From Scyliorhinus canicula (taxonomy: Eukaryota), in NCBI RefSeq assembly GCF_902713615.1, contig NC_052174.1, forward strand, positions 12,704,514-12,768,513: a DNA stretch of 64,000 nucleotides, written 5' to 3'. The notes beneath the pieces are model-generated. The model ran no database searches and had not been told where the DNA came from. It saw nothing but the letters and a program-made list of their open reading frames with translations. The position numbers and the translations under genes were made by a program. Shown here piece after piece: positions 29,586 to 38,077 of this stretch; position 1 is the first letter of the stretch, and each line of letters opens with the position of its first letter.

Positions 29586-29621
29586 GTTGCTAGGAGACGG
29601 GGCCCAGTTGCTATGGGATAC
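29586..29621. promoter_or_regulatory. Tandem RFX X-box-like motifs upstream of the uncharacterised gene
   Basis: GTTGCTAGGAGAC (29586-29598) and GTTGCTATGGGATAC (29607-29621). Confidence 0.55.
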
Positions 29622-30005
29622 CCTCTCCATCCCTGCCTATTGTCTTTCTTTGCAAAGAAGTCAATGCCGCAGAATTCCTGTCCAGTTGATGCCGTCACAA
29701 TATTGAGAAACCAGCCTTTGAACATCCAATTGCAAAGCTTAGTGGCTGAGCCGATAGAATTTGCTGCAAAGGCAATAAATAATCAGCAAAAAATAAATCT
29801 GGGAGTAGCTCAAAATAACCCAGAGGCAAATTGCAATCGGAAAGAATACACAAAGCTGACATTGTAAAGGTACGAGCATTTAGAAGATCGAAGGAGATGC
29901 CTGCAGTACAATTCTGCTCTCAAACTAAAACGTTTTATTTTTCCTCCCCGCCCCCCACCCACAGTTTCACCTTCCGCCTCCTCGCTTCGAGCAGGAGATT
30001 TCAGC

Positions 30006-30023
30006 ATGAGTTCAGCAGCGGAG
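30006..30023 (+). CDS. Uncharacterised protein, probable first coding exon (MSSAAE)
   Basis: Exon 29965-30023 with cccacag| and GAG|gtaagt. Phase 0, joins the next exon in frame. Confidence 0.6.
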
Positions 30024-30204
30024 GTAAGTCACCTGTTATTGCCGTCGTCACTCCTGTGGTGAAACCGCTGTGTTGTATTGTGCTGCCAGAGTATTACGTG
30101 TTGCACAGGATTATCACAACGCCGCCCTTTCTCTAACTGTTGACGATTCGCCCTCGTTTTTCTATCCAAAAAGGTACTGCATTCGTGTGGGGGCCTCACG
30201 GTAT

Positions 30205-30803
30205 AGATATAGAGAAATACAGCACAGAACAGGCCCTTCGGCCCACGATGTTGCGCCGAACTTTTGTCCTAGGTTAATCATAGAATTTTGGACAATTTTT
30301 CACGGCCAATCCACCCAACCTGCACATCTTTGGACTGTGGGAGGAAACCGGAGCACCCGGAGGAAACCCACGCAGTCACGGGGAGGATGTGCAGACTCCG
30401 CACAGACAGTGACCCAAGTCGAAATCGAACTTGGGACCCTGGAGCTGTGAAGCAATTGTGCTATCCACAATTGTGCATACCGGTAGCATGGTGGTTAGCA
30501 TCAATGCTTCACAGCTCCAGGGTCCCAGGTTCGATTCCCGGCTGGGTCACTGTCTGTGTGGAGTCTGCACGTCCTCCCCGTGTGTGCGTGGGTTTCCTCC
30601 GGGTGCTCCGGTTTCCTCCCACAGTCCAAAGATGTGCGGGTTAGGGTGGATTGGCCATGCTAAATTGCCCGTAGTGTAAGGTTAATGGGGGGGATTGTTG
30701 GGTTACGGGTATACGGGTTACGTGGGTTTAAGTAGGGTGATCATTGCTCGGCACAACATCGAGGGCCGAAGGGCCTGTTCTGTGCTGTACTGTTCTATTC
30801 TAT
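30205..30803. mobile_element. Head-to-head inverted SINE pair (minus copy 30205-30478, plus copy 30481-30803)
   Basis: Two SINE bodies in opposite orientation, abutting at ~30480. Confidence 0.9.
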
Positions 30804-31314
30804 ATAAGTGTGCCGCCTTCCCCAGCCTTGGGGGGGTGGGGGCTGGCCGAATTGGCTTCCCCAGTCAATGGCGTGCTTTCCGAACTCGCCACGGAGCAGT
30901 AATATCGGAAACCCGGCGGCCCCTTGGCGCACAGATCTGACCCGTTGGGTTCACGAACCGGGAGACGCGGATTTACACGTCTTGGACGAGAAAGGGTGGG
31001 GGGAATGTAAGGGTGAGCTATTTAACACAGGCAATGACCCGGAGCTCGCTGTCCATAAAAGGGGGGGGGAAGAGACGATGAAAGGAGATCTTGAACTGAA
31101 TAAACGTGCAGGGATACACGAAGAATGGGACTGACTGGACAGAGAGCTGGGACGGACTTGACGGGCTACAATGACACAGCGACCTCTCACGGGCGGCGGT
31201 CTGATCGTTGACCTCAGCTCGTGATGTTGGTTGACGGATAAATGAGGACCATCATTTCTCAACTGCCTTGTTTCCCCACTCCCAAGTCCTCCTAATTCGC
31301 TTCTGTGCTCCTAG

Positions 31315-31383
31315 GACAAGATGAAGAAAGTGAAGAGGCTTCAGGACTTCCTCGGAGATTTGATGGTACTGGGATCACTGCAG
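31315..31383 (+). CDS. Uncharacterised protein exon (DKMKKVKRLQDFLGDLMVLGSLQ)
   Basis: ctcctag| and |gtaagg, phase 0-0. Confidence 0.8.
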
Positions 31384-31840
31384 GTAAGGGGGGGATTTGG
31401 AAAGAGAGCGAAGGAACGTCAGCCTTCTGTACTTGTCTTTGAGGCTCTGTCAGGACTTTTTGAACGCGATACCTTCTTGCCGGAAGCTGGCATAACCTTG
31501 GATACAAAAACAAAGGATAGGAGCTGGAGTTCGCCATGCGGCCCCTCGAGCCCGCTCCCCAATTCAGTACGATTGTAGCTGAACAGCCAGGTCTGGCACT
31601 GCCAAGGTGCACAGGTGTCACTACCGGCTGGCAGTGAATACTGCCAGGGTGCCAGGTTGGCGGTGCCAAGCTGCCATTTTTCACACGGCGACGATCAGGC
31701 CAGGCGTACCCTGCGCAAGGCATTGGAGGAGTGTGGGTAGGGGACCTGGGGACCCCTGATAGAGAGTTGGGGCTTGGGGCTGGTCGGGGGTCCAGAGAGC
31801 GAGACGCCATTTAAAAATGGTGGCCTGATTACTCTGAAAT

Positions 31841-35384: not shown

Positions 35385-35645
35385 CTGCGGAGTCTGCACA
35401 TCCTCCCCGTGTCTGCGTGGGTTTCCTCCGGGTGCTCCGGCTTCCTCCCACAGCCCAAAGACGTGCAGGTTAGGGTGGATTGGCCGTGCTAAAATTGCCC
35501 CTTAGTGTCCAAAAAGGCTAAGTGGGGGTTGCTGGGTGATGGGGATAGGGTGGAGGTGTGGGCTTGGGTAGGGTGCTCGTTCCAAGGGCCGGTGGAGACT
35601 CGATGGACCGAATGGCCTCCTTCTGCCCTGTAAATTCTATGATTC
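35385..35645 (+). mobile_element. 5'-truncated V-SINE/HE1-like SINE
   Basis: Core and tail only. Confidence 0.85.
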
Positions 35646-35996
35646 GTTGATTTGAGGTGTGGTGGTCCTCGGGTTAAATCCCCACCAATCAGCTCTCCCC
35701 CTCAAAAGGGAAAACAGCCTATAGGCCCCGGGGACCATGACGACTTGCATCTTTTCTTAAGTAAGGAGAGCAGCCGAGTACGCGGTATTTTAGGTGTGGT
35801 TTCACCAATGCCCTGGACAGCTGTGGCAAGGTGCAATTGAAATGCAGACTTTCCCCGTGTAAACGGGGAAGGCAGCCACCTCATCGGCCCCGCTGCCTCC
35901 TGCGACGTCTCCATTCCTCCCGCCCCTGACCACCCCACCGCCCGCCAAACGGCCTTCCTCCCTCTCAGCAGCGTCTCGCTCTCTGTCTTTCCACAG

Positions 35997-36194
35997 ACGG
36001 GCAGATCTGGGAGATTGTGACGGAGCTGGTGGAACTCTGCACGAGGCCTCCACCCTCAAACCCGTTCACCCTGGACATCAGGTACTTCGAGAGCCTCCCC
36101 CTGATGGAGAGGTACCTGGCATCTGGGGCTATGGTCAGCTTCCTCCAGAGGATCGTAATCTATGGAAATCGTGAGAAGCCCTATTACACCAAAG
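35997..36194 (+). CDS. Uncharacterised protein exon (GQIWEIVTELVELCTRPPPSNPFTLD...EKPYYTK)
   Basis: tttccacag| and |gtaaag, phase 1-1. Confidence 0.85.
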
Positions 36195-36394
36195 GTAAAG
36201 TGTGTGGCCGTGAATGGTTAAAGGACGGCCAATCCTGGACACCTGTTTATAATTCTGATTCTTACTTTTCTCTTTATGAAAGCTGCGACATTATCTTTCT
36301 GATGTTACCGTGTGAAGTGGGCCCACAAATATCTGATTCTCACTGATAAATCCACTGAGGAATTCAGGAGAAACTTCTTTTCCCAGAGAGGGGA

Positions 36395-37800
36395 GAAAAT
36401 GTGGGACTCGCTCTTACGGGGGAGTGGGGAGAATGTGGGACTCGCTCTTACGGGGGAGTGGGGAGAATGTGGGACTGTCTCCCACAGGGAGTGGGAGAAT
36501 GTGGGACTCGCTCCCACGGGGAGTGGGGAGAATGTGGGACTCGCTCCCACGGGGAGTGGGGAGAATGTGGGACTCGCTCCCACGGGGAGTGGGGGAGAAT
36601 GTGGGACTCGCTCCCACAGGGAGTGGGAGAATGTGGGACTCGCTCCCACGGGGAGTGGGGGAGAATGTGGGACTCGCTCCCACGGGGAGTGGGGTGAATG
36701 TGGGACTCGCTCTTACGGGGAGTGGGGAGAATGTGGGACTCGCTCCCGCGGGGAGTGGGGAGAATGTGGGACTCGCTCCCATAGGGAGTGGGGAGAATGT
36801 GGGACTCACTCCCACAGGGGAGTGGGGAGAATGTGGGACTCGCTCCCACGGGGAGTGGGGGAGAATGTGGGACTCGCTCCCACGGGGAGTGGGGTGAATG
36901 TGGGACTCGCTCTTACGGGGAGTGGGGAGAATGTGGGACTCGCTCCCGCGGGGAGTGGGGAGAATGTGGGACTCGCTCCCATAGGGAGTGGGGAGAATGT
37001 GGGACTCACTCCCACAGGGGAGTGGGGAGAATGTGGGACTCGCTCCCACGGGGAGTGGGGAGAATGTGGGATTCGCTCCCACGGGGAGTGGGGAGAATGT
37101 GGGACTCGCTCCCACGTGGAGTGGGGAGAATGTGGGACTCACTCCCACGGGGAGTGGGGAGAATGTGGGACTCGCTCCCACGGGGAGTGGCGAGAATGTG
37201 GGACTCGCTCCCACAGGGGAGTGGGGAGAATGTGGGACTCACTCCCACGGGGAGTGGGGTGAATGTGGGACTCGCTCCCATGGGGAGTGGGGAGAATGTG
37301 GGACTCGCTCCCGCGGGGAGTGGGGAGAATGTGGGACTCGCTCCCATAGGGAGTGGGGAGAATGTGGGACTCACTCCCACAGGGGAGTGGGGAGAATGTG
37401 GGACTCGCTCCCACGGGGAGTGGGGAGAATGTGGGATTCGCTCCCACGGGGAGTGGGGAGAATGTGGGACTCGCTCCCACGTGGAGTGGGGAGAATGTGG
37501 GACTCACTCCCACGGGGAGTGGGGAGAATGTGGGACTCGCTCCCACGGGGAGTGGCGAGAATGTGGGACTCGCTCCCACAGGGGAGTGGGGAGAATGTGG
37601 GACTCACTCCCACGGGGAGTGGGGTGAATGTGGGACTCGCTCCCATGGGGAGTGGGGAGAATGTGGAACTCGATCCCGCAGGGTGTGGGGAGAATGTGGA
37701 ACTCGCTCCCACAGGGAGTGGGGAGAATGTGGCATTCGCTCCCACGGGGAGTGGGGAGAATGTGGGACTCTCTCCCACAGGGAGAGGGGAGAATGTGGTT
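36395..37800 (+). repeat. 33-bp G-rich minisatellite (GGGGAGTGGGGAGAATGTGGGACTCGCTCCCAC), CR1-derived
   Basis: ~42 units, contiguous with a CR1 ORF2 3' remnant at ~36330-36410. Confidence 0.95.
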
Positions 37801-37859
37801 TACAGTGATTTCAGATTTAATTCCTGGGACATGTGCGACTGGTGTGTTTTATCTTTCAG

Positions 37860-38077
37860 TTTTGGAAGAACTGGAGACCCTGAATCGATTCCACGTGAAA
37901 TCTCTCCACGAGATTCAGAAAGTGAAGCTGAGGGAGATGGAGGAGGAGGCGGGGATGGAGGATGGAGGATGGAGGAGGAGGCGGGGATGGAGGATGGAGG
38001 AGGAGGAGGCGGGGATGGAGGATGGAGGAGGAGCCGGTGAATACATGATTGACAGCAGCCTATCCAACAGCGAGTGA
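37860..38077 (+). CDS. Uncharacterised protein, probable last coding exon (LEELETLNRFHVKSLHEIQKVKLRE...SSLSNSE*)
   Basis: atctttcag| acceptor, phase 1. The true 3' end is uncertain because of a repeat-derived tail and a possible donor near 38036. Confidence 0.65.

Follow-up and report, generated by a model that had tools for sequence, protein, structure and literature searches.

A catshark gene of the eukaryote-wide DUF7886 family encodes a candidate pseudo-E2 protein

What is encoded by the stretch just downstream of TRAPPC1 in the catshark Scyliorhinus canicula? I analyzed a window of 64,000 nucleotides (the whole stretch from position 12,704,514 to 12,768,513 of contig NC_052174.1, forward strand, in the RefSeq assembly GCF_902713615.1), and all positions below are those of the window unless a contig is named. 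The original prediction, made from the sequence alone, was that an intact and old gene of eight exons lies here, that it has no recognizable human counterpart, and that it may be associated with cilia or sperm. It was found that the gene is the orthologue of zebrafish si:dkey-19b23.7 and belongs to a eukaryote-wide family, Pfam DUF7886 (PF25377). The family has been catalogued but is unstudied; a literature search for DUF7886, PF25377 or dkey-19b23.7 found no paper. As an overall explanation, to which I give a probability of roughly 0.6, this real and selected orthologue encodes a pseudo-E2 adaptor, that is, a protein with a ubiquitin-conjugating (UBC)-type fold and a non-catalytic role.

The gene lies on the plus strand. 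All eight exons are bordered by GT and AG, exon 1 being counted from the ATG and exon 8 to the TGA. Translation of the joined exons confirmed the phases and gave an open reading frame (ORF) of 933 nucleotides, consisting of 310 codons and the TGA at 38075-38077, with no internal stop codon. Exons 6 and 7 translated singly both match DUF7886, with E-values of 3.8e-20 (72.5 bits) and 1.4e-21 (77.2 bits), respectively. Since the two matches occupy neighbouring parts of the DUF7886 profile, the frame and the junction of these exons are correct. The predicted gene structure was thus confirmed in full. Its novelty was not, as the 310-residue product is identical over all residues to the RefSeq proteins XP_038642856.1 and XP_038642857.1 of S. 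canicula. The former is named "uncharacterized protein si:dkey-19b23.7 isoform X1". Hence, the gene model is already public, while the function of the family is still uncharacterized. Isoform X2 (P0291; 302 residues) begins at the methionine of exon 2, and the residue numbers below are those of this isoform (the numbering of the 310-residue model minus 8). RefSeq also has an isoform X3 (P0342; 286 residues) without exon 3. It is probably a non-functional splice form, because skipping of exon 3 removes strands beta1 and beta2 together with an invariant glutamate.

The assignment to the family is clear. Isoform X2 matches DUF7886 with 185 bits (E = 7.5e-55; the cut-off is 27), and all of the 81 aligned relatives match it too. 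An exhaustive HMMER search with exon 7 detected 225 relatives. Residues 1-270 of the spliced model align end to end with proteins of 270-300 residues, including those of Amia and a skate, at 47-51% identity (E-values around 1e-90). The identity is 44-83% to other cartilaginous fish and about 50% to Amia and lungfish. Orthology is indicated by the full-length similarity, by the exon structure shared with the zebra shark, and by a common neighbourhood, with TRAPPC1 on the 5′ side both here and in the horn shark. Two fish members (P0201 and P0204) are named "centriole, cilia and spindle-associated protein" and "Elongator complex protein 2" at their source. I set these names aside as likely annotation errors; neither fits the DUF7886 content.

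Is the gene under selection? The orthologue on a zebra shark contig (L001) has exons of identical lengths (18, 69, 72, 119, 73, 166, and 198 nucleotides for exons 1 to 7). Over the 238 codons of these exons, the nonsynonymous (dN) and synonymous (dS) divergences between the two sharks are 0.124 and 0.785, giving a dN/dS of 0.158, and the differences number 41, 24, and 79 at the first, second, and third codon positions. A Ser/Pro-rich linker inside the protein is likewise constrained (dN/dS of 0.12). These values indicate purifying selection, and the description of an intact, old gene is well founded. The catshark copy differs from the other DUF7886 proteins in exon 8, where a short tandem repeat (37937-38037, plus strand; period of 25-28, 3-4 copies) adds about 27 in-frame residues (MEEEAGMEDGG twice). 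This expansion is absent from other sharks and from S. torazame, and the conserved tail IDSSLSNSE is kept despite it.

The gene is also probably transcribed, on circumstantial evidence. All sequence words of exon 7 are present in small assemblies (21-133 Mb) from several studies, where the RNA label of the underlying runs is only a guess. One of these assemblies (X4) contains all exon 7 words and a fraction of 0.18 of the words in a 5.1-kb exon-plus-intron stretch, of which the exons make up 14%. This is the pattern that spliced transcripts would give. In addition, teleost relatives are complete on contigs of 1-1.8 kb, whereas the teleost genes span about 4-5 kb. Thus, transcripts exist in the relatives.

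To which fold class does the protein belong? AlphaFold2, run with the 81-sequence alignment, predicted a single domain with an alpha-beta4-alpha topology, with a mean predicted local distance difference test score (pLDDT) of 80 and a predicted template modelling score (pTM) of 0.74. The model comprises a helix (residues 2-18), two strands (26-30 and 35-41), a low-confidence stretch (about 45-105), two more strands (113-119 and 128-131), short helices, a central helix (168-179), a Pro/Asn-rich loop, and the helices 192-197, 200-220, and 228-281. A member with a short loop from Diphylleia (229 residues, 34% identical) was predicted to have the same topology, with a pLDDT of 89 and a pTM of 0.87.

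The exons, all on the plus strand, can be overlaid on this model. The coding part of exon 1 (30006-30023, with the ATG at 30006) encodes only MSSAAE and has an equal 18-nucleotide counterpart in the zebra shark. Exon 2 (31315-31383), with the alternative start methionine of isoform X2, would form the N-terminal helix (alpha1 of the UBC-like fold), and exon 3 (32382-32453), which holds the most conserved stretch GFRYFQPWLRGREELLLTVVNED, would form strands beta1 and beta2. Exon 4 (32738-32856) and exon 5 (33959-34031) would supply a Ser/Pro-rich segment of predicted disorder, inserted between beta2 and beta3, that ends with the nearly invariant PPASP motif in exon 5. The linker noticed in the original prediction is indeed the part of the AlphaFold model with a pLDDT below 50 (residues 50-91 of isoform X2). 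Exon 6 (34192-34357) would form strands beta3 and beta4 (LFLLACYAKYQCPHVWIRS) and a Cys-free loop in place of the E2 active-site region. Exon 7 (35997-36194) would contribute the central crossover helix, the Pro/Asn-rich loop with the invariant asparagine in PPPSNPF, and the subsequent helices. Exon 8 (37860-38077) would complete a helical hairpin with the long C-terminal helix, followed by the catshark-specific repeat, the tail IDSSLSNSE, and the stop codon. The Pfam match begins at around position 34002 in exon 5. The Pfam model starts only at PPASP, so that the first third of the structural domain lies outside it. This part comprises the N-terminal helix and strands beta1-beta2, with several of the top-conserved residues (F10, G18, G22, F23, F26, R31, G32, E34, and E35).

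Structure searches pointed to the E2 class. Among the best 50 Foldseek rows against the PDB, almost all for the catshark model and all for the Diphylleia model are E2 enzymes or ubiquitin E2 variants (UEVs), the best rows having E-values of 0.097 and 0.013 (probability of 0.95), respectively. Against the clusters of the AlphaFold database, a UBC E2 (5.7e-3) and a UBC core protein rank directly after 14 clusters of the same family (E-values from 1e-26 to 7e-9). Against the Swiss-Prot models, Rad6-type E2s, UBE2L3, crossbronx, ATG3, and ATG10 are among the rows, all of them weak. A protein language-model search agrees independently with the structure matches; once the family itself is left out, UQ_con accounts for 96 of the 100 nearest named Atlas clusters, with crossbronx first, for both the Diphylleia and the catshark queries. 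It is therefore probable, as far as predicted models can tell, that the whole protein is one fold of the UBC (E2) type.

How similar is the protein to known members of this class? The best structural matches beyond the family are canonical E2 enzymes of the UQ_con type (such as UBE2G1, UbcH7, Ube2W, and Rad6), and nearly the whole E2 core is covered. In contrast to these enzymes, the DUF7886 proteins have no HPN motif and no conserved Cys and stay below the Pfam threshold, and the structural alignments show a sequence identity of about 10-16%. Inactive E2 variants, such as crossbronx/AKTIP (FTS), UEV1/Mms2, the UEV domain of TSG101, and the UEV-like domain of VPS37A, share with the family the predicted alpha-beta4-alpha fold of the UBC type and the lack of a catalytic Cys, and crossbronx forms the nearest language-model clusters. 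However, there is no significant sequence similarity to them. A UEV (PF05743) match at an E-value of 1 or lower was obtained for 3 of the 81 members, the best one, in a lungfish protein (P0026), having 18.5 bits and an E-value of 0.0019 against a cut-off of 27 bits. The DUF7886 protein also differs from these variants in the disordered insertion of 60 residues between beta2 and beta3, in the long C-terminal helix, and in its own invariant motifs RGxEE, PPASP, and PxPxNP. The original prediction had compared the protein with Atg3 and Atg10. The E2-like hunch is broadly supported, since the predicted fold is of the broad UBC type, and Atg3 and Atg10 share this superfold and likewise carry core insertions. 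Both are confined to weak rows of the structure and language-model searches, with very low scores (TM-scores of 0.13-0.32 and probabilities of at most 0.15). Autophagy_act_C is not among the Pfam families listed for the members, there is no catalytic Cys, and canonical E2s, UEVs, and crossbronx are nearer.

Is the protein an active enzyme? E2 enzymes carry an HPN motif and an active Cys in the loop after beta4. In the 81-sequence alignment, no column has Cys in more than 73% of the members, and the loop between beta4 and the central helix contains neither a Cys nor an HPN motif. Only two residues are invariant, E34 and N186. The family therefore fails the defining test of a catalytic E2, and judging from its sequences the DUF7886 protein is unlikely to form a thioester. 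Pseudo-E2 proteins typically serve as adaptors, either in trafficking or in ubiquitin signalling. A non-catalytic adaptor role is the function I slightly favour for this family. Such an adaptor might act much as UEV/Mms2, TSG101, or AKTIP/crossbronx do, and would bind ubiquitin, a ubiquitin-like protein, or a partner via the strongly conserved beta1-beta2 face and the C-terminal helices.

How widely is the family distributed? Among cartilaginous fish, it was found in six shark genera, in rays and skates, and in a chimaera. Other vertebrates with a member are sturgeon, paddlefish, bichir, gar, bowfin, many teleosts, lungfish, frogs, salamanders, and lampreys. Invertebrate members are known from a hemichordate, a sea cucumber, molluscs, and Trichoplax, and those of unicellular animal relatives from choanoflagellates, Syssomonas, and Pigoraptor. 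In fungi, the family occurs in chytrids (Synchytrium and Rhizophlyctis) and zygomycetes (Basidiobolus, Tieghemiomyces, and Haplosporangium). Diphylleia and Euglena also have a member, and one Atlas cluster is commonest in green algae. On the other hand, no reptile, bird, or mammal was among the matches listed by a word-index search, which included an axolotl query and does not amount to proof of absence. An amniote orthologue would be expected to score at least as high with the axolotl query as the fish listed, and the negative result thus holds for that query too. A loss in mammals had been predicted. It is supported and can be sharpened, in that no amniote was found among the matches listed while frogs and salamanders keep the gene. 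This also sets the family apart from the inactive E2 variants, whose families are kept in amniotes.

A few results seem worth keeping. An unstudied eukaryote-wide DUF is placed, by prediction, in the E2/UEV fold class; its structural domain is bigger than the Pfam model and lacks the catalytic Cys; and its distribution is patchy, ranging from green algae to amphibians, with amniotes not found. A conserved pseudo-E2 that humans lack would be a modest lead that is testable in zebrafish or Xenopus. A bolder idea, which I regard as rather doubtful, is that DUF7886 is a pseudo-E2 family from near the last eukaryotic common ancestor, working with a partner or ubiquitin-like pathway, that was lost in separate events in amniotes, apparently also in Dikarya fungi, and probably elsewhere, and that in sharks came additionally under the control of RFX factors. 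If this is true, the genes lost in the same lineages would reveal the DUF7886 pathway.

Several observations weigh against the pseudo-E2 reading. No structural match beyond the family itself passes the significance lines of the tools. In the VIA-align lists, helical-hairpin matches to the C-terminal helices outrank the E2 rows; I set these matches aside as generic, common arrangements. UQ_con (PF00179) is not among the 25 families listed of the 27 matched by the 81 members at an E-value of 1 or lower, and no solved structure was matched by sequence with exon 6, exon 7, or the family profile as the query. Moreover, 59 of the 81 members (73%) have a Cys at C179, where the central helix ends, and this residue could matter in some lineages. 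Might the likeness to E2 then be no more than a common arrangement of helices and strands, with DUF7886 as an independent fold that has, for example, a small-molecule or peptide site around the invariant Glu and Asn and the Arg-Gly-x-Glu-Glu motif? The TM-scores of 0.25-0.5 and the lack of an above-threshold hidden Markov model link to the UBC clan would fit this. However, with two members that share only 34% identity as queries, nearly all top rows in three libraries are E2s or UEVs. The match takes in almost the full E2 core (107 of 122 residues), and the language-model search arrives at the same assignment independently. E2 landmarks are presumably mirrored in the Y-x-x-Y-x-x-P-x-x-W hairpin and in the helix with the Pro/Asn-rich loop after it. 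An independent fold is thus unlikely. Less probable still is an active, atypical E2-like enzyme that carries a ubiquitin-like modifier via a lineage-variable Cys, such as C179, or via another nucleophile. The predicted UBC-like fold would allow it, ATG3, ATG10, and UFC1 are among the weak neighbours, and besides C179 there is C113, which is Cys in 48 of the 81 members. It is known that Atg10, Atg3, and UFC1 likewise deviate from the canonical HPN-Cys pattern. Nevertheless, no Cys is family-wide, and C179 is absent in the chimaera and in many protists. Its position is not in the loop after beta4 that holds the active Cys of E2 and E2-like enzymes, invariance is limited to a Glu and an Asn, and UQ_con, Autophagy_act_C, and UFC1 are all missing from the Pfam families listed for the 81 members.

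Could the gene be a target of RFX factors that act on tandem X-boxes and activate it in ciliated or germ cells, its protein serving the axoneme or the basal body? The two X-box-like motifs predicted about 400 bp upstream of the ATG are both present within 36 nucleotides on the minus strand. Site 1 (29586-29598; GTCTCCTAGCAAC) lies 420 nucleotides before the ATG, matches RGYAAC perfectly and departs from GTNRCC at one position, and site 2 (29607-29621; GTATCCCATAGCAAC), with one mismatch, lies 399 nucleotides before it. They were scored with the pattern GTNRCC(N0-3)RGYAAC allowing at most one mismatch. Each is thus one mismatch off the consensus, and neither matches a stricter pattern. At the place of site 2, a palindromic X-box that fits the consensus perfectly, GTTGCCAAGGCAAC (L001 9650-9663, at -351), is found in the zebra shark. 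It stands next to the end of an 8-copy tandem array of 23 bp (GTTGCTAGGGGAGGCAGGGCCCA; L001 9466-9654) with an X-box half-site in each unit. The two catshark sites are two units of that repeat, of which the zebra shark has eight, and they are therefore not independent of each other. Sites with one mismatch are also common by chance, at about 0.9 per 2.3 kb in the window. No X-box within one mismatch was found in 4 kb upstream of the paddlefish gene or in 2 kb upstream of the Poecilia gene, while Characodon has a single one-mismatch site upstream. From these motif scans, conservation of the X-box is plausible at the level of sharks, on the basis of two species, and conservation does not extend to paddlefish or Poecilia over the upstream stretches scanned.

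The distribution of the family bears on the same question. Members occur in flagellate lineages (chytrids, choanoflagellates, Euglena, and green algae), and crossbronx, the nearest language-model neighbour, has a role in Drosophila spermatogenesis. These points would suit a ciliary or sperm-associated gene. However, a core ciliary gene should be present in ciliated and absent in non-ciliated eukaryotes, and the phylogenetic profile does not follow this rule. Basidiobolus, Tieghemiomyces, and Haplosporangium are fungi without flagella and have the family, while it was not found in amniotes, although these have cilia. Both facts argue against a core ciliary role. The suggested association with cilia or sperm was therefore not borne out, and regulation of this kind by RFX factors seems unlikely.

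The position next to TRAPPC1 was confirmed. Coding exons of TRAPPC1 lie upstream on the same plus strand, near 15371, 18643, and 19789 (MTVHNLYIFDRNG, MYGMLFSIRSFV, and YKLHYYETATGIKIVMNTD). The order in the horn shark is a TRAPPC1-like (Sybindin) gene, the DUF7886 gene, and a PTB/PID gene on the opposite strand. This convergent PTB/PID adaptor gene is found 3′ of the DUF7886 gene in the horn shark, in two teleosts (L002 12951-14053 and L003 12670-13578), and in the paddlefish (L004 8852-9911). The pairing of DUF7886 with PTB/PID is a long-lived microsynteny. A basking shark contig has three DUF7886 genes in tandem (357, 289, and 289 residues), the result of either local triplication or duplication in the assembly.

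The locus is rich in repeats. A minisatellite of 2.65 kb, with about 60 copies of 44-47-bp units, lies between TRAPPC1 and the gene (26733-29380). The zebra shark has a related 45-bp array at the equivalent place (L001 8404-9235), and the position of the array has thus persisted between the two shark species. Most of intron 7 is filled with about 42 copies of a 33-bp minisatellite (36398-37798, with no strand assigned). Just 3′ of the stop codon, a G-rich minisatellite (38254-39206) has units of 30, 59, and 89 bp and accounts for the strong GC skew at 36500-39000. Finally, intron 1 contains an interspersed repeat (30294-30467), probably a SINE-like element (short interspersed nuclear element); a zebra shark intron has a copy on the opposite strand (L001 15293-15468) that shares 77% identity with it.

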